A stretch of DNA of 64,000 nucleotides, taken from sequence record OR805295.1. One strand, given 5' to 3'. Positions 25,528 to 48,551 of this stretch are shown piece after piece. Position 1 is the stretch's first letter; each line of letters opens with the position of its first letter. A program made the translations under genes and the position numbers. Below the pieces are notes generated by a model. The model was not told where the DNA came from, did no database searches, and worked only from the letters and a program-made list of their open reading frames with translations.

Positions 25528-25553
25528 ATATGCAATGTTTAACGGAGTTAACA

Positions 25554-25829
25554 ATGACTGACATTAATCCAAATTCTCGCCACTACTCTGCTGAAGACGT
25601 CCGGCGAATTAAACAGTTAGTTTCTGAAGGCATGCAAGTCATGCAAGAAATTGAAGATTTAAAAACCGGACTAGCAGAAACAGTTAAAGCAATTGCAGAA
25701 GAAGTAAATGTTAAGCCTTCCCAGCTTAATAAAGTTATTAAAATCGCACATAAACGTTCTTTAAACGAAGAACTAGATAAGATTAATGAAGTAGAAGAGA
25801 TTCTAGACGCAATTAAAGAAGGTCGTTAA
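25554..25829 (+). CDS. small dsDNA-binding protein (T4 DsbA / GapR-like)
   Basis: Helical 91 aa with KAIAEEVNVKPSQLNKVIKIAHK; ATG 25554 has a GGAG RBS. Confidence 0.55.
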   Translation: MTDINPNSRHYSAEDVRRIKQLVSEGMQVMQEIEDLKTGLAETVKAIAEEVNVKPSQLNKVIKIAHKRSLNEELDKINEVEEILDAIKEGR

Positions 25830-25841
25830 TATTTTCAAAAC

Positions 25842-25870
25842 AAGCCGTGCTTTTGCGCGGCTTTTTATTT
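25842..25870 (+). terminator. intrinsic terminator
   Basis: aagccgtgc-tttt-gcgcggctttttattt. Confidence 0.7.
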
Positions 25871-25882
25871 TGTAGGACAATT

Positions 25883-28294
25883 ATGTACATCGATATTTTC
25901 GAAGATAAGAAAAATGAAATACTTCTAGTTGCAGAACGATCTGCAGGCAAACGAATATACAAACAATACCCTATAGATCATACGTATTACATATTAGATG
26001 CAAACGGACCGTATAAAGATATATTCGGTAATAATGCTAAAGCAATTAAGCCATCTAGCATAAATGAAAAAATGACTCAAATGAAAATGCTAGATTTTTC
26101 GCAAACGTGCGAAATAGACGTCAGGCCAGAATTTAGATGCCTGGAAGTAAACTATAAGAATGCACCTATGCCAGATTTACATGTTGCATTCTTCGATATC
26201 GAGACCGCGTTTGATCAAAAACGCGGTTATGCTGACCCGGCTGATCCTTTTAATCCCATTATATCAATATCTGTATATTTGCAATGGATGCAGCAAATGG
26301 TTTGCTTAGCATTAGCACCAGAGACTATATTGCCAGAAGATGCACAACGCATAGCATCGGAAGTAGGCGAAACAATTATATGTAAAAATGAAAAAGAAAT
26401 GCTAAGTATGTTTATTGACTTAGTAGAAGATGCAGATATTTTATCAGGTTGGAACTCAGAACGTTTCGATATTCCCTATACTTTTAACAGAATTGTAAAA
26501 TTATTAGGTAAGAATGAACTAAGAAAATTATGCCTTTGGAATCTTATGCCCAAGAAGCGCAATATTGAACAAGAAGGCGGCAGTAGTTTTGTTACATTCG
26601 AAACGTTTGGTAGAATACATTTAGATTATCTCCAATTGTATAAAAAATATAATTACGAAGAACGTCATAGTTACTCGTTAGATTCTATTTCGGAAATTGA
26701 ACTAGGTGAACGAAAAGTTCCATACAACGGAACATTAGACAAACTTTATAAATATGATTTTAAAAAGTTTTTAGAATATAACATTCAAGATACTCGACTC
26801 CTAGATAAGTTAGATAGAAAATTAAAATATATAGATCTAGCTTCCACTATTGCACATAGTAATTGCATTCCTATCCCTACTGTTATGGGTGCAGTAGCTA
26901 CAACCGAACAAGCAATTATAATCGAAGCACATAATAACGGCATGATAGTGCCATCTAGGCAACGTTTTAAAAACAATGATACACTTAAAGCTGCAGGCGG
27001 ATGGGTAGCATATCCTAAAGTAGGACTGCATAGAGATATTGGCTCCAGTGACTTAAATTCTCTGTATCCTTCTGTGTTAAGGGCACTAAACATGAGTCCA
27101 GAAACTATTATAGGACAAGTTCGGTTAACACTTACTAACCCTGCAATCGAAGAATGGTGTGCAAAAGGCGGAACAAAACATACATTTGCTGCATGGTGGA
27201 ACGATAGGTTTACCACTTTAGAAATGGAATATGTGTTAAACAAAGACAGGGGTACTATATTAACGTTAGATATGGCAGACGGGCGTTCGTTTGAACTGTC
27301 AGGTGCCGAAATATACGAATTAGTATTCAACAGTGGTCAGAATTGGCATATCAGTGCTAACGGAACTATATTTACACAAGACAGGGCAGGTGTAATTCCG
27401 TTACTACTTACAAGATGGTATGCAGAACGTAAAGGGATGCAGAAAATTGCATCAGATTATAATTCTTTAGATAAAGAACACCATAGCGACAAAACTGTAT
27501 TTTTAGAAGATAAATCAGTATTAGATGGAATATGCGTAGGCGAAGTCGAATTAGCAGACCATTATAATATTAATGATGTATATGTTGCAGCTACATTAAA
27601 AAAACTTGTCGAATCAAAAAATTGGCAAGAAGTAGCAATATATATGAAAAAGTATGGACTAGAAGTGTCGTCTGACAATTCAATTGTTATGTCAGATTCC
27701 CATATGCAAAACGAATATTACGAATATTGGGATAAAGCCCAGTTAGTTCGTAAAATTGGATTGAACAGCTTATATGGCGGACTACTTAACGAACATTCTA
27801 GATTCTACGATAAAAGACTAGGGCAGAGTACTACACTCACAGGGCGCTGTATCACTAGACATATGGCTTCTAAAACAAACGAAATGTTCACTGGCATTTA
27901 CGATCACGAAGGCGATTGTGTAATTTATGGTGATACAGATAGTGTAGATGGATCAACTATCCTAAATACTTCTCTAGGTAAAATAACTATAGAAGAATTG
28001 TTTAATGTGTCTGACAAGCATGTAGTTCATGCAGAAAAAGAATTTGCTTCAAATGAAGATGTTATGGTAATGTCGTGGGACAATTCTGCAAAACAACCAT
28101 ATATGGGGCATATAAACTATGTGTACCGCCACGAAGTAGAAAAAGAGTTATTCGAAATAGAAGACAACAACGGAAATAAAGTTATTGTAACCGAAGATCA
28201 TTCTATTATGGTTATACGTAATGCAGAACTACTAGAGGTTAAACCCACAGATTTAACAGATAGTGATATAATATTATCTATTGTATATGAATAA
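25883..28294 (+). CDS. polB: DNA polymerase family B, N-terminal part fused to split-intein N half
   Basis: ExoI FFDIET, ExoII GWNSERFDIPY, ExoIII YNIQD, motif A SSDLNSLYPS, motif B KIGLNSLYG, then YGDTD followed by intein sequence. Confidence 0.95.
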   Translation: MYIDIFEDKKNEILLVAERSAGKRIYKQYPIDHTYYILDANGPYKDIFGNNAKAIKPSSINEKMTQMKMLDFSQTCEIDVRPEFRCLEVNYKNAPMPDLHVAFFDIETAFDQKRGYADPADPFNPIISISVYLQWMQQMVCLALAPETILPEDAQRIASEVGETIICKNEKEMLSMFIDLVEDADILSGWNSERFDIPYTFNRIVKLLGKNELRKLCLWNLMPKKRNIEQEGGSSFVTFETFGRIHLDYLQLYKKYNYEERHSYSLDSISEIELGERKVPYNGTLDKLYKYDFKKFLEYNIQDTRLLDKLDRKLKYIDLASTIAHSNCIPIPTVMGAVATTEQAIIIEAHNNGMIVPSRQRFKNNDTLKAAGGWVAYPKVGLHRDIGSSDLNSLYPSVLRALNMSPETIIGQVRLTLTNPAIEEWCAKGGTKHTFAAWWNDRFTTLEMEYVLNKDRGTILTLDMADGRSFELSGAEIYELVFNSGQNWHISANGTIFTQDRAGVIPLLLTRWYAERKGMQKIASDYNSLDKEHHSDKTVFLEDKSVLDGICVGEVELADHYNINDVYVAATLKKLVESKNWQEVAIYMKKYGLEVSSDNSIVMSDSHMQNEYYEYWDKAQLVRKIGLNSLYGGLLNEHSRFYDKRLGQSTTLTGRCITRHMASKTNEMFTGIYDHEGDCVIYGDTDSVDGSTILNTSLGKITIEELFNVSDKHVVHAEKEFASNEDVMVMSWDNSAKQPYMGHINYVYRHEVEKELFEIEDNNGNKVIVTEDHSIMVIRNAELLEVKPTDLTDSDIILSIVYE
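27941..28291 (+). mobile_element. split intein, N half (117 aa, Ser1, no Cys)
   Basis: Begins SVDGSTIL immediately after YGDTD; block B IVTEDHS; ends at stop codon 28292-28294. Confidence 0.92.
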
Positions 28295-29969
28295 AGAATA
28301 TTATCAGTCATACGCAAAAGAATTAAAAAAGAATAATAAGAAAGAATACAATCGTATTCTTTCTTTGTATGAGCCCGTATTTGATAAATGGGTTGCATTC
28401 AAGTATTATATAGAAGGAATATCGCCGCCTGTATGTAAAGAATGTGGTAATAGAATAACTGTTTCGGCAAAACAAGCAGAATATCACACAGAATGCAAAT
28501 ATAATAAACACAAGTATTCATTTGATAAATTTATAAAATGCATAGATGATGACCAATACATATATTGTGTGTGGAATGGATATATTCCGACATCTGACAA
28601 TATAACATACAGATGCACTAAACACGGCATAATTGTTCAAAAACTTAGTTCTAGACTAAAAGGTCACAAATGCCAAAAATGTTCAGCTGAGCGTAAAGTA
28701 AGTCTAGATAACTTTAATAACTGGAAAACGCAGTGTTCTAAAATACATAATAATTTTTATGATTATTCTGTATCTACTGATTTTACATTCTTAACAAAAG
28801 ATGTATCTATTAAATGTCCAATACATGGAATATTTAAACAAAAAGCAAACGTCCATCAATCAGGTCACGGTTGTAAAAAATGCTCGTTCGAAGCTATCGG
28901 TCATAAATTATCATATGACACCGATTCTTTTATAGAAAGAAGTAATAACGTTCATAATAATTTTTATGACTATACCAAAACTATATACACTAACATTAGA
29001 GATAAAGTTGTTATAACATGTCCGATACACGGCGACTTTAACCAGATAGCATATTATCATACTGCCGGGCACGGTTGTCAGAAATGCGGTTTAGATAAAG
29101 TAGCAGAAACTACATATAGATCTAAGGCAGAAATAGAAATATTCGATTTAGTTAAATCTTATTGCTCAGATACAATTCATTCATACAATAAATTTGGGTT
29201 CGAATTAGACATATATGTTCCTAGTAAAAATCTTGCAATAGAATATAATGGACTTTATTGGCATTCTTCTAAACACATAGAAACTGATCAAAAATATAAA
29301 ACATACCATCTTGATAAAACCACTACATGTGAACAAAATAATATCCAATTATTACACATTTTCGACAACGAATGGCATACTAAAAAAGATATATGGATCT
29401 CGGTAATAAAAAATAAACTAGGTTTATCTAATAAAATATATGCAAGAAAAACAGAAATTAAAGAAGTTAAGTTCGATGATGCAAAGCAATTCGCCGAAAC
29501 GAATCATTTGCAAGGTCATGCACAATTTCGGCATGCATACGGATTGTATTATTCGGATCAATTAGTTTCTTTATTAACAATTGCAAAGCCCAGGTTTAAT
29601 AAAAATGCAAACTGGGAAATAGTAAGATTTTGTAACCTAAATAACACAAGTGTAATAGGTGGGTTTTCTAAATTATTAAAGGTAGTTTCTTGTAATTTTA
29701 CAGGCAAGATAGTATCATATGCAAATAGGCGCTGGTCTGCTGGAAACGTTTATGAAAAAAACGGATTTGCTAAAACTTCAGTAATAGCTCCTGGATTTTA
29801 TTATACTGACTTCAAAGATACATATAATAGATTATCTTTCTCTAAAGACAAGGCAAAAGTTAAATTAAAAAATTATAATAATTCAGTTAGTGTAGTAGAA
29901 AATATTTACGCAAACGGATATGGCAGGATTTGGGATTCAGGAAATATTGTTTATACAAAGGATTTATAA
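28287..29969 (+). CDS. free-standing putative homing endonuclease between the intein halves (Zn-finger repeats + Vsr-like PD-(D/E)XK + GNAT-like tail)
   Basis: Three C(P/T)xHG.....(H)..GH.C.KC repeats; ELDIYVPSKNLAIEYNGLYWHS; C-terminal SYANRRWSAGNVYEKNGF. ATG 28287 overlaps the polN stop. Confidence 0.85.
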   Translation: MNKEYYQSYAKELKKNNKKEYNRILSLYEPVFDKWVAFKYYIEGISPPVCKECGNRITVSAKQAEYHTECKYNKHKYSFDKFIKCIDDDQYIYCVWNGYIPTSDNITYRCTKHGIIVQKLSSRLKGHKCQKCSAERKVSLDNFNNWKTQCSKIHNNFYDYSVSTDFTFLTKDVSIKCPIHGIFKQKANVHQSGHGCKKCSFEAIGHKLSYDTDSFIERSNNVHNNFYDYTKTIYTNIRDKVVITCPIHGDFNQIAYYHTAGHGCQKCGLDKVAETTYRSKAEIEIFDLVKSYCSDTIHSYNKFGFELDIYVPSKNLAIEYNGLYWHSSKHIETDQKYKTYHLDKTTTCEQNNIQLLHIFDNEWHTKKDIWISVIKNKLGLSNKIYARKTEIKEVKFDDAKQFAETNHLQGHAQFRHAYGLYYSDQLVSLLTIAKPRFNKNANWEIVRFCNLNNTSVIGGFSKLLKVVSCNFTGKIVSYANRRWSAGNVYEKNGFAKTSVIAPGFYYTDFKDTYNRLSFSKDKAKVKLKNYNNSVSVVENIYANGYGRIWDSGNIVYTKDL

Positions 29970-30224
29970 ATGCATAATCTAACAAAACACCTTTTAGGTG
30001 TATTTTCTGCAAAAACAGAAGACGAAGAATATAACAGTGCAAAAAGAGCGTTAGAAGAATTAAACAAAAATATAAAAGAAAGAGATCCTAATAAATTTAA
30101 TGTGTCTTTAGGAAAGGTATCTAAAGTAACTAATTTAGGAAAAAAGAAACAATATGTATACGATATAGGGATGAAAAATCCCGATAATCCGTATTTCTTT
30201 GGAAATAATATATTAGTTCACAAT
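29970..30224 (+). mobile_element. split intein, C half (85 aa, ends His-Asn, +1 Ser, no Cys)
   Basis: Block F VYDI, block G VHN; extein starts at TCT 30225. Confidence 0.92.
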
Positions 30225-31109
30225 TCTTGCTATTTTACTGCATGGCCTGCAGTAAAAGACCTAGTAGAATCTGGCGAAATGGAATGGGATAAAGATACTG
30301 TCATTAAATTATACGACAATGTTTCGTCACAAGTAAGTGATACATTTCCAGAATTTTTAAAACAAACATTTAATGTTCCATATAAAAACTCAGAAGGTGT
30401 TATTAAGTCAGGTAGGGAAATTGTAGCTACTTCTGGTCTTTTTATTAAAAAGAAACGTTATGCTGCTATGATGTATGATAAAGAAGGTACTAGATACGAC
30501 GACGAAAACAGCCCAGGAAAAGTAAAAGCAATGGGTTTAGACTTACGTCGGTCAGATACGCCTAAATTTGTCCAAACATTCCTTATGGAAATTCTAGTTA
30601 TGGTGCTAACACATAAAACAGAAGATGAAGTAATAGAATATATCAGAGAATTTAAAAAAGAATTTAATAAAATGAAACCGTGGGAAAAGGGAATGCCAAA
30701 AGGCGTCAACGGTATCAGTACATATGAAGATAAATTAGAAGAACACATGAATAAAAAGTTAGCAGGAAGAGAGTCTAGAATCACTGTCCCCGGTCACGTG
30801 TCTGCTGCAATGAATTGGAATAAACTAAAGCTTATCAATAAAGACCTACATACTCCTAAAATCTCAGATGGTCAAAAATGTGTTGTTTGCTATTTAAAAG
30901 AAACAGCAGACAATCATTTCACTAGTATAGCATATCCTGTGGATGAATTGCACTTACCAGAATGGTTTACGTCTTTGCCATTTGATGAAGATTTAATGAG
31001 AGAAAAAGTAGTAGATAACAAAGTTAAGAACCTTTTAGGTATTCTAAAATGGGATTTTAGTAAAACAGAAGAAGCTGCTGCACACTTTGATTCGCTGTTT
31101 GGTTGGTAA
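29970..31109 (+). CDS. polB: split-intein C half fused to DNA polymerase B C-terminal part
   Basis: VYDIGM...FFGNNILVHN|SCYF, followed by KKRYA and KVKAMGLDLRRSDTP. Splicing would restore YGDTD-SCYF. Confidence 0.95.
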   Translation: MHNLTKHLLGVFSAKTEDEEYNSAKRALEELNKNIKERDPNKFNVSLGKVSKVTNLGKKKQYVYDIGMKNPDNPYFFGNNILVHNSCYFTAWPAVKDLVESGEMEWDKDTVIKLYDNVSSQVSDTFPEFLKQTFNVPYKNSEGVIKSGREIVATSGLFIKKKRYAAMMYDKEGTRYDDENSPGKVKAMGLDLRRSDTPKFVQTFLMEILVMVLTHKTEDEVIEYIREFKKEFNKMKPWEKGMPKGVNGISTYEDKLEEHMNKKLAGRESRITVPGHVSAAMNWNKLKLINKDLHTPKISDGQKCVVCYLKETADNHFTSIAYPVDELHLPEWFTSLPFDEDLMREKVVDNKVKNLLGILKWDFSKTEEAAAHFDSLFGW

Positions 31110-31189: not shown

Positions 31190-31936
31190 ATGATTGTAGA
31201 CAATTTAAAGGACGTAGTTCGTAACACTCACGGTTTAGGTTTTATAGATACTGTTAAAATTATCGGTTCTGTAAATGAAACTAAATTAGAAGCTATGTCA
31301 ACTAATAAAACTGTAGTTATGTACGGTTCTTTAAAAAAATCCATTCCGGGGTTAGACGATACTGTAGGTTTAAGTAGAATGTCTGTACTGAGCGGTATGT
31401 TAAATTTCCCACCATATTCGGGAGATGATGCTGAAGTTTCTATTAAGAAACAAGAACGTAACGGTGAAGAAATTCCTGCAGAAATTGTATTTTCTTCTTC
31501 GACGGGTCATAAATCGTCGTACCGGTTTATGGCACGAGATACAGTAGATGAAGTGCTAAAAGTTCCGCCGTTTAGAGGAGTTGTGTGGGATATAGTTATT
31601 CAACCTACTAAGCAAGCGATGAAAGATCTTCAATACTTTAGTGCTGTACTGGGTTCTTATGAATCTAACTTTTTAGTTAAAGTAACAGACGGTGTTTTAG
31701 AATTCCACATAGGTACTGGTGCTACTAGCGACCGTACTGTTGTACCATTTGCAAAAGATGTCAAGAGCACATTACGCAATAACTGGTCCTGGCCATTACC
31801 GGAAGTGTTAGCAATTCTAAAAAACGCAGATAGTGGCAAATGTACTATGTCTATTTCTAGTCAGGGTGCATTGATGATTGAACTCGACACTGGGCTAATA
31901 GAAGTTCAATATATTCTTCCTGCAAAAAGTGCATAA
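31190..31936 (+). CDS. putative sliding clamp / polymerase processivity factor
   Basis: 248 aa (clamp-like size), alternating beta/alpha pattern, directly after the polymerase. No diagnostic motif. Confidence 0.45.
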   Translation: MIVDNLKDVVRNTHGLGFIDTVKIIGSVNETKLEAMSTNKTVVMYGSLKKSIPGLDDTVGLSRMSVLSGMLNFPPYSGDDAEVSIKKQERNGEEIPAEIVFSSSTGHKSSYRFMARDTVDEVLKVPPFRGVVWDIVIQPTKQAMKDLQYFSAVLGSYESNFLVKVTDGVLEFHIGTGATSDRTVVPFAKDVKSTLRNNWSWPLPEVLAILKNADSGKCTMSISSQGALMIELDTGLIEVQYILPAKSA

Positions 31937-45461: not shown

Positions 45462-45815
45462 ATGATCGTCAGCGAGATTATATATTCTATTTTCATAGCT
45501 GCATTAATAACAGTTATGACTATACTATATATAAGTCTCAGAATAATAACATGTAAGATATTAAATAAGTCATTAAAGATTTCAGCTAATGTAATTATAT
45601 ATGGTACCTCTAATATAGAATATGTATATATTCCTGAAATAAAATATAAATTTCTTTCTTTTAAAATAACACATTCTGGTTTAGTTATGTTTGATAAAGA
45701 GTTTGGATTTAGGACACTAAACGATGCCATAAATGCATTAAATATGTATGTAGACACCGATATTATAAAAATAGTATATAAAAAGGTACCCACATTTTAT
45801 ACTTGGCACGAATAA
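45462..45815 (+). CDS. membrane protein, tandem paralog 3 (single TM)
   Basis: ATG 45462; similar C-terminal helix pattern. Confidence 0.55.
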   Translation: MIVSEIIYSIFIAALITVMTILYISLRIITCKILNKSLKISANVIIYGTSNIEYVYIPEIKYKFLSFKITHSGLVMFDKEFGFRTLNDAINALNMYVDTDIIKIVYKKVPTFYTWHE

Positions 45816-47311
45816 TGGATAATTTTGATATAGAATTAAAAGAACTCATAAAAAATACAAATCCTAACGCATTAGGAAATGTAGTAAAAAGTAAAAAAGA
45901 AATATATGAGGAATTAGTTCGTCGAACTAATTCCTTTCTTCGTGACGACGTTTCTGTAACAGAAAGGATTCATATATACTTAAATCCGGCTGATAATGTT
46001 TACTGTAAGTATGATAACAAACGGACACTAAAGCGAAATAAAGATACAAAACAAACCCAATACGGATTTTGCGGAAATAAAAGTAAATGTAAATGTCATA
46101 TGGAATGGTCTTTAAAAAATCATCCAGGCATGACACAATCCGGAAAAGAAAGTATGAAAACAAAGAGGATAAAAACTTGGATAGAAAAATACGGTGTCGA
46201 TAATCCATCTAAGTCAAAAGATATTATTGCAAAACAGCAATTAAGTAAAAAACATATAAAGCCAGATCATAGAACTATAAAGGAATTGGGATATAAAAAA
46301 GTAGTAGAACGACTTTCTAACATACTCACCCCTACGTTTAGTATAGACGAGTACGAGGGGTGCTTTAGAAAAAATGTGTATGACTGGGTATGCAATGCAT
46401 GCGGAAATATAGTTATCGGACACGTAGATTATGGGTCTACTCCGAGGTGCAATGTTTGTAATCCTATAACAAAGTCTGCCGGCGAGAATGAAATATCTAA
46501 CTATATAGTATCGCTAGGATTTGATGTGATTAACAATGACCGAACTATATTATCTAACAAAGAATTAGATATAGTAATTAAAGGTACAAACATAGCAATA
46601 GAATATAATGGTTGTTATTGGCATTCTACAAAACACAGAAAAAAATCATATCATGTAGATAAATTTATAGAATGCAGAGATAAAGGAATAAAGTTAATAC
46701 AAATTTTAGATGTAGATTGGATATCAAAACAAGACATAATAAAATCAAGGTTAAAATCTATTTTAGGTTGTAGTGATAGAATATATGCAAGGAATACAAC
46801 CATAAAAGAAATAACATTTAACGAATCTTTAACTTTTTTAGAAGAAACTCACATCCAAGGTTCTTGTCAATCATCTGTAAGACTAGGTCTATACGACAAT
46901 GAGAATTTGTTAGTAGCCGTAATGACATTTGGGAAATCTAGATATACAAAAGAGGAATATGAGTTACTTAGGTATGCTAGCAAAAATACTGTTGTAGGAG
47001 GAGCCAGCAAACTTCTTAAATATTTCATAAAAACCTATTCCCCCAAATCTATCATTACATACGCAGACAGGTGCTGGTCAGATGGAAATTTATATAAACA
47101 ACTCGGGTTTACAAATGTAACTAAGAATGACAGAAATACAGGATATTGGTATATAAAAGACAACATAAAATATCATAGATCTAATTTCATAAAATCTAAG
47201 ATTTCTAATAAAAATAATTTACATCTAAGCGAATCGGAAATAATGGATAGTTTAGGTTATTTAAAATATTACGATTGCGGCAATTACAAATATACATTGC
47301 AGGTACGCTAG
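45815..47311 (+). CDS. free-standing putative homing endonuclease, same family as 28287-29969
   Basis: KYGVDNPS, two CxxC, ELDIVIKGTNIAIEYNGCYWHS, ITYADRCWSDGNLYKQLGF. TAATG coupling at 45813-45817. Confidence 0.8.
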   Translation: MDNFDIELKELIKNTNPNALGNVVKSKKEIYEELVRRTNSFLRDDVSVTERIHIYLNPADNVYCKYDNKRTLKRNKDTKQTQYGFCGNKSKCKCHMEWSLKNHPGMTQSGKESMKTKRIKTWIEKYGVDNPSKSKDIIAKQQLSKKHIKPDHRTIKELGYKKVVERLSNILTPTFSIDEYEGCFRKNVYDWVCNACGNIVIGHVDYGSTPRCNVCNPITKSAGENEISNYIVSLGFDVINNDRTILSNKELDIVIKGTNIAIEYNGCYWHSTKHRKKSYHVDKFIECRDKGIKLIQILDVDWISKQDIIKSRLKSILGCSDRIYARNTTIKEITFNESLTFLEETHIQGSCQSSVRLGLYDNENLLVAVMTFGKSRYTKEEYELLRYASKNTVVGGASKLLKYFIKTYSPKSIITYADRCWSDGNLYKQLGFTNVTKNDRNTGYWYIKDNIKYHRSNFIKSKISNKNNLHLSESEIMDSLGYLKYYDCGNYKYTLQVR

Positions 47312-47366: not shown

Positions 47367-48551
47367 ATGTCCACTAAAACCCTAGAAGAACGCATCATCC
47401 GCGCCCGTGTTCAGTTGCTGTTGAACCATCCGTTTTTCGGGACCTTGGCGCTGCGCCTTAAACTAGTCGAGGCGAACGACTGGTGCCCTACTGCCGGTAC
47501 TGATGGACGCCATCTTTATTATAATACCAAGTTCCTCGAAGACTTGGACGATAAGGAACTTATCTTCCTCATCGGTCATGAGGTAATGCACGTCGTCTAC
47601 GACCACATGGGACGGCGCGGCAGCAGAGAGCCTAAACTGTGGAACTGTGCTGCCGACTTTGTTATCAACCTCGAATTGCACGATATGAAGATCGGCAAGC
47701 TTATCCACCGTCCGGGTACTTGCGAGCCGTGCTTTGACGAAAAGTACCGCGGAATGTCCGCTGACCAGATCTATGAACTAATTAAGAAAGATCCGTCGCT
47801 AAAAGATAAAGATAGCTTCGACGTTCACCTCGAACCCGGTGGTGCCGGGAATGAAGACGGCGATGCTTCTGGCAAATCCGGTCCTATCCCTATGTCTGCA
47901 GATGAGCAAGCTGCTCTTCGGGACGAGATCACTGAAGCTGTTCTTCAGGCTGCTAAAGCTGCTGGTGTCGGCAACACTCCGGCAGGTGTGCGTCAGATGA
48001 TCAGTGACATCACTGAACCTAAACTAGATTGGCGCGAATTGCTAAACCAGACTATTCCGTCGCACATTAAATCCGACTATATGTGGACTCGACCGTCGCG
48101 GAAGAGTTGGGGAACTGGTGCGACTCTGCCGGGTCAGATTGTTGATGACAAAATCGATGTTATCCTGGCACTAGACGCCTCTGGTTCGATTAGCTCTTCT
48201 CAGCTAAGGGATTTCTTAGGAGAAGTGTTAGGAATTATGGAACAGTTTAGTGACTTTTCCATACAAGTGCTAACGTTTGATACTAGAGTGTATGAATTCC
48301 GAAAATATACTCCCGACAATGCAGACGAAATCTATGAGTATCCCCTTAAAGGCGGCGGCGGCACCGATTTTGTGGCTGTGTTTAACTTCCTTAAAGATAC
48401 GCTCACTGAACCGCCGCATCAGTTAGTATTCTTCACTGACATGGAAGTGTATGACTACGGCGATCCTAACTATTGCGATACTGTGTTTATAAACCACGGT
48501 CGCAAAGGTGTAACTGCACCGTTTGGCATCACCATCGACTACGACGAATAA
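47367..48551 (+). CDS. putative metallopeptidase + VWA-like domain protein (DUF2201-type, MoxR partner)
   Basis: LLNHPFFG, TAGTDG, GHEVMH (HExxH), WNCAADFVIN, LDASGS (MIDAS), GGGGTDF, FFTD. GC-rich. Confidence 0.88.
   Translation: MSTKTLEERIIRARVQLLLNHPFFGTLALRLKLVEANDWCPTAGTDGRHLYYNTKFLEDLDDKELIFLIGHEVMHVVYDHMGRRGSREPKLWNCAADFVINLELHDMKIGKLIHRPGTCEPCFDEKYRGMSADQIYELIKKDPSLKDKDSFDVHLEPGGAGNEDGDASGKSGPIPMSADEQAALRDEITEAVLQAAKAAGVGNTPAGVRQMISDITEPKLDWRELLNQTIPSHIKSDYMWTRPSRKSWGTGATLPGQIVDDKIDVILALDASGSISSSQLRDFLGEVLGIMEQFSDFSIQVLTFDTRVYEFRKYTPDNADEIYEYPLKGGGGTDFVAVFNFLKDTLTEPPHQLVFFTDMEVYDYGDPNYCDTVFINHGRKGVTAPFGITIDYDE

Follow-up and report, generated by a model that had tools for sequence, protein, structure and literature searches.

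The DNA polymerase gene of Pseudomonas phage Paride is interrupted by a predicted cysteine-free split intein whose halves flank an endonuclease gene

We examined a 64,000-nt stretch of the genome of Pseudomonas phage Paride (OR805295.1; hereafter "the window"), in which the gene for DNA polymerase B (PolB) is found in two pieces at window positions 25883-31109 (5227 nt; 100% identical to positions 87883-93109 of the record). The most probable reading of this region, to which we assign a probability of roughly 85%, is that of a fractured gene, with an intein in polymerase motif C that is split by a free-standing endonuclease gene and would be spliced in trans. Judged by their sequence, the two intein halves form a naturally split class-1 intein that uses serine at both nucleophilic positions (Ser1 and Ser+1) and contains no cysteine. 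The core of this finding is already published: Imam et al. (2019, Front Microbiol, PMC6892783) described a split PolB intein in Pseudomonas phage vB_PaeM_MIJ3, which carries the same element as Paride (98.1% DNA identity across the region, with N- and C-terminal intein halves that are 100% identical as proteins), and the record of phage PA5oct carries an annotation of the same element. Since the identical intein was described in 2019 and GenBank already annotates the three genes, an initial annotation of this stretch that considered the intein possibly new does not hold on that point. Our analysis adds an assignment of the endonuclease outside the HNH families, a charge polarity reversed relative to the Aes123 group, a clade-specific tail on the C-terminal intein half, and turnover of the gene occupying the endonuclease slot.

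The region consists of three open reading frames (ORFs), of which GenBank labels the outer two "DNA polymerase" and the middle one "homing endonuclease" (variants: "putative Hef-like" and "HNH" homing endonuclease). Their coordinates in the window, with those of the polymerase and intein segments that they encode, are as follows.

25883-28294, + strand: polN ORF, 803 residues, with its TAA stop at 28292-28294.
25883-27940, + strand: PolB N-extein, comprising the exonuclease domain together with motifs A, B and C, as far as YGDTD (Pfam, phrog_262).
27941-28291, + strand: N-terminal intein half (IntN), 117 residues (polN residues 687-803), with Ser1, the NX pair R63-H64 and block B T84-x-x-H87, ending in VYE.
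28287-29969, + strand: endonuclease ORF, 560 residues.
29970-31109, + strand: polC ORF, 379 residues.
29970-30224, + strand: C-terminal intein half (IntC), 85 residues (polC residues 1-85), running from M to ILVHN and followed by SCYF.
29970-30113, + strand: N-terminal tail of IntC (residues 1-48), which does not resemble an intein and is predicted to form two helices.
30114-30224, + strand: IntC core, residues 49-85, with block F VYDIG (D65) and block G ILVH84-N85.
30225-31109, + strand: PolB C-extein from Ser+1 (SCYF...), including the stop codon (phrog_262).

The polN stop and the endonuclease ATG share an 8-nt overlap, ATGAATAA, and the endonuclease TAA directly abuts the polC ATG (TAA-ATG). 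The endonuclease shares its reading frame with polC but not with polN. These ORFs and counts agree with the initial annotation, which had described motif C as cut at YGDTD/S...VYE (/ denotes the extein-intein boundary) by a 117-residue IntN ending in a stop, a separate gene that resumes at ...VHN/SCYF after an 85-residue IntC, and a 560-residue endonuclease between them in a frame unlike that of polN, with the same two junctions. Of the 85 residues then taken as IntC, however, only residues ~49-85 stand as intein, the rest being an N-terminal tail. A tRNA scan of the window returned none.

The two polymerase pieces appear to be complementary parts of a single enzyme. The N-extein matches the Pfam families DNA_pol_B_exo1 (5e-23) and DNA_pol_B (3e-21) and carries motif A as DLNSLYPS, motif B as KIGLNSLYG and motif C as YGDTD (residues 682-686), beyond which polN reads SVDGST...SIVYE before its stop. 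Against the phrog_262 profile (856 positions), the polN piece covers positions 10-583 and the polC piece positions 581-852, such that the pieces abut. In the closest cultured polymerase, PolB of Agrobacterium phage Atu_ph07 (44% identical to the C-extein), motif C is unbroken and reads NDTDSAYFTA, compared with YGDTD plus SCYFTA in Paride. Because the exteins abut in the profile and the Atu_ph07 motif is uninterrupted, the insert is cleanly delimited, and removing it restores a contiguous, conserved host motif.

The insert itself carries the sequence features of an intein divided over two proteins. IntN matches the Pfam family Intein_splicing (PF14890) at profile positions 2-93 with 37.5 bits (cut-off 35.8), and IntC matches the complementary positions 100-155 with 22.2 bits. 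The nearest solved structure to IntN is that of the Aes123 PolB1 intein (PDB 9hth, E 7.9e-12), with further matches among Ser1 inteins to TFIIB, PI-PkoII and PI-PfuI; the IntC core matches the PolB16 intein (8cpo, E 0.006) as well as the Aes123 intein. In its AlphaFold2 (AF2) model, the IntC core has a predicted local distance difference test score (pLDDT) below 50, as expected for a split-intein half without its partner.

Aligning the Paride halves with the inteins of Aes123, PTm1, CP21 and SCTP-2 places the catalytic residues in register. Ser1 (SVDGST, directly after YGDTD) aligns with Ser1 in each of the four others, and the TxxH of block B (N3), found in Paride as T84-E-D-H87 within VIVTEDHSIMV, is conserved in all five. 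Upstream of block B, Ser1 inteins have a specific NX motif in which a histidine follows an arginine or lysine (Pasch et al. 2023, PMC10189870); the corresponding Y-V-Y-R63-H64 in Paride aligns with a Lys/Arg-His pair in the four other inteins. IntC contributes the aspartate of block F (C2) as VYD65IG and block G (C1) as ILVH84-N85, immediately followed by Ser+1. All six intein blocks and every class-1 catalytic position are found in the Paride halves, which combine the nucleophile, block B, blocks F and G, a profile match split between two proteins and a restored host motif, as a class-1 split intein should. The blocks A, N2, B, N4, F and G given in the MIJ3 paper match those of Paride, SVDGSTILNTSL, TIEELFNV, NKVIVTEDHSIMV, LLEVKPTDLTDSDIIL, VYDIGMKNPDNPYFF and GNNILVHNS, respectively (PMC6892783).

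This arrangement is stable across isolates. The region is 98.1-98.9% identical in DNA to ten other Wroclawvirus records, including PA5oct and MIJ3; with PA5oct present twice, these records and Paride make a comparison set of Paride and nine further isolates. The further isolates originate from Switzerland, Spain, Japan and Thailand, with the PA5oct and MIJ3 records giving no country. All ten isolates have the same 5227-nt layout, free of indels and stops and with identical junction sequences. The ratio of non-synonymous to synonymous polymorphism (pN/pS) among them indicates strong purifying selection on each part.

polN extein: pN/pS 0.03; 71 synonymous-only and 13 amino-acid-changing variable sites.
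IntN: pN/pS 0.05; 19 synonymous-only and 4 amino-acid-changing variable sites.
Endonuclease: pN/pS 0.10; 48 synonymous-only and 31 amino-acid-changing variable sites; intact in 10/10 isolates.
polC extein: pN/pS 0; 31 synonymous and 0 non-synonymous variable sites.

The few substitutions within IntN and IntC neither touch a catalytic residue nor add a cysteine. Both halves have a cysteine count of 0 in 10/10 isolates, and with Ser1 and Ser+1 aligned, the claim that the halves are Cys-free with Ser nucleophiles is confirmed. Relatives L015-L017 and the inteins of CP21, PTm1 and KP13-7 have one to three non-catalytic cysteines each. Fully Cys-free pairs are those of Paride and Aes123, among the cultured phages compared, and of the metagenomic relative L018.

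The closest parallel is Aes123 PolB1, an intein of an Aeromonas phage and the source of the engineered CL and CLm. The kinship proposed in the initial annotation is borne out by alignment, with the same PolB host, the same insertion point (DTD/S...VHN/S) and the same conserved blocks. Like the Paride intein, Aes123 PolB1 is naturally split and Cys-free, uses Ser1 and Ser+1, has an NX Arg/Lys-His pair, and has a Vsr-like endonuclease gene between its halves. The two are 35% identical in IntN and 42% in the IntC core. They differ in the length of IntC (39 residues in Aes123, 85 in Paride) and in the endonuclease, which in Aes123 has 353 residues and lacks the zinc-ribbon repeats and GNAT domain found in Paride.

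Beyond the genus, the closest cultured relative of IntN is the PolB mini-intein of Salicola phage SCTP-2 (37.6% identity, E 5e-16), a resemblance on which the MIJ3 paper also remarks (PMC6892783). Unlike the split intein of Paride, that of SCTP-2 is contiguous, about 163 residues long and without an endonuclease. It also lies two residues further upstream (YGD/S...KN/TDS), with Thr+1 and with the penultimate His changed to Lys. KP13-7 (L020), like SCTP-2 (L004), carries a homologous intein at this second site (YGD/S...N/TDS, Thr+1), as do P0134 and P0139. The IntC of KP13-7, as called, has 122 residues.

The layout of the locus also matches the fractured genes described by Dassa et al. (2009, PMC2677866), as the initial annotation had recognized. 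In both, an enzyme N-terminal part fused to IntN, a free-standing endonuclease gene and IntC fused to the enzyme C-terminal part are co-oriented, the host is a phage enzyme of DNA metabolism, the endonuclease has a Vsr-like catalytic domain, and the intein halves are oppositely charged. Paride deviates in its 8-nt overlap, where those loci place 27-51 nt of non-coding sequence ahead of the endonuclease, and in its 85-residue IntC, where 33-54 residues are typical; PolB, moreover, lies outside the eight enzyme types of that study (PMC2677866).

Two features at the edges of these genes bear on their expression.

25842-25863, + strand: strong terminator-like hairpin, its 9-bp stem holding 6 GC pairs and leading into a T run, just upstream of polN and after a DsbA-like gene.
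29958-29962, + strand: Shine-Dalgarno sequence AAGGA, 7 nt 5′ of the polC ATG and inside the last endonuclease codons.

No + strand terminator comparable to this hairpin was found within 25883-31109, and the region therefore fits a single, putative transcription unit. A promoter scan found 39 candidates, which is not above the 30.7 ± 6.1 expected from shuffled sequence. The AAGGA preceding polC is identical in 10/10 isolates. The endonuclease start, by contrast with that of polC, lacks a Shine-Dalgarno sequence and overlaps the polN stop, suggesting that endonuclease translation is weak and coupled to that of polN.

If the polymerase is assembled by trans-splicing, polN-IntN and IntC-polC would be translated separately, with polC using its own Shine-Dalgarno sequence, and the endonuclease would probably be made at a low level through reinitiation, given its start context. 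The acidic IntN (net charge -14) and the basic IntC core (+4) would meet electrostatically and fold into a HINT domain. By analogy with class-1 intein chemistry and with the active, allelic Aes123 intein, splicing would then proceed through oxyester steps, namely an N-O shift at Ser1, transesterification to Ser+1, cyclization of Asn85 and an O-N shift. The ligated product would be a contiguous polymerase of about 110 kDa with YGDTDSCYF restored, for which TNEMFTGIYDHEGDCVIYGDTDSCYFTAWPAVK is the predicted tryptic junction peptide. The unspliced complex is unlikely to polymerize, because the insert adjoins the catalytic aspartates of motif C. The endonuclease would serve as the mobility engine, cutting polymerase alleles that lack the endonuclease gene and being copied into them by repair.

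Split inteins bind tightly ahead of splicing, and intein-free PolB pieces are tolerated at other positions (565 + 417 residues in Atu_ph07; gp43A/B in Aes123). The two polymerase pieces could in principle function as a non-covalent heterodimer, with the intein halves acting as a non-splicing dimerization handle. We consider this improbable. A mere handle needs no catalytic residues, yet Ser1, R63-H64, T84/H87, D65, H84-N85 and Ser+1 are all kept and invariant in the ten isolates, and IntN as a whole is constrained (pN/pS 0.05). From what is known of PolB structures, a HINT domain of ~200 residues beside the motif C aspartates should also block the active site.

Far less credible is a scheme in which recoding, by a +1 frameshift from polN into the endonuclease and readthrough of the TAA before polC, produces a single cis-splicing intein with an embedded endonuclease. 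The 8-nt overlap and the common frame of endonuclease and polC, with the TAA alone between them, are compatible with such a scheme. A shared frame, however, is expected by chance in one of three cases, and relatives with the same intein show other frames (a 35-nt spacer in L016; overlaps of 14-16 nt). Recoding would also require two independent events; no slippery motif is apparent at the polN/endonuclease overlap, where the junction was read by eye, without a motif search; polC owns a Shine-Dalgarno sequence; and the endonuclease family is free-standing elsewhere, as in the paralogue at 45803-47311, rather than intein-embedded. Sequencing or assembly error, raised as a general possibility in the initial annotation with nothing further in its favor, and pseudogene decay have a negligible probability, as identical layout and junctions in ten independently isolated and sequenced phages and strong purifying selection on all three ORFs exclude an artefact and mark the stop and frame change as genuine, and the architecture recurs in distant metagenomic relatives.

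Several points nonetheless weigh against trans-splicing as we propose it. By itself, IntC falls under the Pfam cut-off (22.2 vs 35.8 bits), though this is expected for a 37-residue half. Its unusual 48-residue tail might slow or modulate assembly, and a further replicative polymerase may be encoded outside the window. Splicing itself is what we infer from related inteins, and our literature searches found no splicing assay or other biochemistry on the Wroclawvirus PolB intein.

The tail sets the Paride IntC apart, as only residues 49-85 (about 37-40 of the 85) resemble other inteins. AF2 places its two helices at residues 2-13 and 19-37 with modest confidence (pLDDT 59-74). A tblastn search with IntC residues 1-48 found no match outside Wroclawvirus. 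Among 19 metagenomic polC relatives, nine have a comparable tail of weak conservation, with BLASTP coverage of up to 99% of residues 1-95, and the tail is absent from Aes123, CP21, PTm1 and L018. It is also possible, though less so than the orthogonal splicing discussed below, that the conserved helical tail is a functional unit adjusting when the polymerase is assembled. Production of a shorter IntC from an internal start is unsupported: of the only two in-frame candidates, the GTG at codon 45 has no Shine-Dalgarno sequence, and the ATG at codon 68 lies inside block F.

At the DNA level, the IntC region (29970-30224) shows low diversity, with 3 variable sites in 255 nt compared with 4.2% overall among the ten isolates, and includes an invariant run of 148 nt at 30052-30199. 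This dip has a Poisson P of 0.006 uncorrected and is lost once about 20 windows are corrected for. The region also contains a small palindromic hairpin, at 29987-30001.

The charges of the two halves are reversed relative to the Aes123 group. A recount gave the same values as the initial annotation, with 23 Asp/Glu vs 9 Lys/Arg in IntN and 6 Lys vs 2 Asp in the last 37 residues of IntC. Net charges of IntN and of the last 40 residues of IntC compare as follows.

Paride: IntN -14, IntC +4.
Aes123: IntN +8, IntC -11.
PTm1: IntN +8, IntC -13.
CP21: IntN +3, IntC -8.

Where it deals with the intein, the MIJ3 paper takes up neither the Cys-free halves nor the NX histidine, is silent on charge polarity and the IntC tail, and gives no splicing assay (PMC6892783).

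The endonuclease matches phrog_559 (1.7e-118) and phrog_3339 (1.2e-99) over its full length and has more than 5000 homologues. An AF2 model built on 40 of these has a mean pLDDT of 91.5. We divide the protein into three modules.

28419-29096, + strand: zinc-ribbon module, residues ~45-270, with three treble-clef repeats (CxxHG...GHGCxKC).
29112-29420, + strand: Vsr-like (PD-(D/E)xK fold) nuclease core, residues ~276-378, with D308, E319, W325-H326 and D343-K344.
29424-29966, + strand: GNAT-fold, Mom-like C-terminal domain, residues ~380-560 (Foldseek, Pfam).

The zinc-ribbon repeats are likely a DNA-binding module, as predicted from their sequence. Pfam identifies DUF723 in the Paride protein (2.7e-7) and in 36/40 family members, with DUF4379 in 21/40, and the zinc-ribbon cysteines and histidines are invariant in the family alignment. 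Published work on phage homing endonucleases takes DUF723 to be a zinc-finger domain that binds DNA (PMC10448857).

For the nuclease core, we base the link to Vsr on profile comparisons. Alignment by hhalign with six Aes123-type "VSR" endonucleases gives a probability of 93.3% (E 2.8e-7) with the nuclease motifs in register. Pfam assigns MTES_1575 to 18/40 and Vsr to 6/40 family members, the Paride endonuclease itself being sub-threshold to MTES_1575 (E 0.029). The motifs of Vsr-like homing endonucleases are the equivalents of Vsr Asp51, of Phe67-Trp68-His69 together with an invariant Glu, and of Asp97 (Dassa et al. 2009, PMC2677866). Through the Aes123-type profile, their counterparts in Paride would be D308, E319-Y-N-G-L-Y-W325-H326 and D343-K344...IFDNEW. 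D308, E319 and H326 are invariant in the 40 homologues, and conservation of W325 and K344 is 90% or higher; D343, which we picked out visually in the hhalign consensus (HL-KT vs D--K), is outside the listed conserved columns of the family alignment. Between zinc ribbons and GNAT domain, the AF2 model has the order strand-strand-strand-helix-strand expected for a core of the PD-(D/E)xK type. Searching the endonuclease sequence against the PDB gave nothing at E ≤ 1, and Foldseek with the whole model gave no direct structural match to Vsr, the search being dominated by the C-terminal GNAT/Mom domain. The best Foldseek match in the PDB is Mom of phage Mu (8bv8, E 4.9e-6), ahead of numerous GNAT acetyltransferases, and Pfam finds Mom (PF25680) in 12/40 family members. 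Mom of phage Mu is a DNA-modifying enzyme, and its counterpart here may bind DNA or perhaps also modify it, for instance in self-protection.

The term "Vsr-like" in the initial annotation thus fits the catalytic core, with hhalign and the Pfam matches of family members in support, and understates the protein, which by its sequence belongs to a larger, three-module "Hef-like" family distinct from that of the Aes123 endonuclease. Pfam matches at E ≤ 0.01 for the endonuclease and its 40 aligned homologues include no HNH family. With HNH signal absent, the HNH label that the MIJ3 paper and record apply (PMC6892783), and that phrog_559 bears in PHROGs, is unsupported, and we reject it in favor of the Vsr-like core.

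A free-standing paralogue of the endonuclease lies at window positions 45803-47311 (+ strand; probable ATG at 45815, about 498-502 residues). It is 37.5% identical to endonuclease residues 272-557, spanning the nuclease core and the Mom-like domain, but differs from the endonuclease in its N-terminal region. Its Pfam matches are weak (MTES_1575, 1e-4; Vsr, 0.006).

"Hef-like" endonucleases (phrog_559/phrog_3339) are usually free-standing between genes, whereas in Paride and the metagenomic L015 one sits inside a split intein (42% identity between the two endonucleases). In L016, L017, Aes123, CP21 and PTm1, the slot is instead occupied by an Aes123-type endonuclease (blastp 1e-20 to 1e-41). 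In L018, the gap between IntN and IntC is 108 nt (L018:5893-6000) and has no endonuclease, encoding a C-terminal, Aes123-type Vsr-like remnant, ...VFVIWENDWYHDQ...KEWWN. Because the same intein allele elsewhere holds the other type or a remnant, the endonuclease appears to be a separate mobile unit. The remnant motif in the L018 gap, ...GYEVFVIWENDWYHDQYTIIQRVKEWWN, offers a snapshot of endonuclease loss.

Among neighboring genes, that upstream of polN (25530-25829, + strand) encodes a DsbA-like protein (T4 late transcription regulator) with a weak Pfam match. Downstream of polC, a 248-residue gene (31190-31936, + strand) has no Pfam match and conflicting annotations, as "proliferating cell nuclear antigen" in PAC2 vs a structural protein detected by mass spectrometry in PA5oct. 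The paralogous endonuclease gene is followed by a gene for a DUF2201 metallopeptidase and VWA protein (47367-48551, + strand).

The element looks functional and has already been described; its interest lies mainly in its being a candidate for a trans-splicing pair that is orthogonal and free of cysteine. Efficient cysteine-less split inteins number two in the count of a 2025 paper, and a recent search for such inteins tested CP21, LCGC14 and GOM-OPS-1, the Wroclawvirus intein not being among them. Its lack of cysteine and its polarity, opposite to that of the Aes123-derived inteins, make it a reasonable candidate for an orthogonal pair. We regard it as possible, if doubtful, that the Wroclawvirus PolB intein, trimmed of its 48-residue tail, splices efficiently and orthogonally to Aes123 PolB1, CL and CLm; this would provide a further thiol-independent pair for tandem trans-splicing.

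For the phages themselves, the series of Hef-like endonuclease, Aes123-type endonuclease and remnant illustrates homing endonuclease turnover inside a split intein. The Paride polymerase is also a clear case of an essential gene that is fractured: this 287-kb jumbo phage, under study for its killing of Pseudomonas aeruginosa, presumably needs protein trans-splicing in order to replicate.

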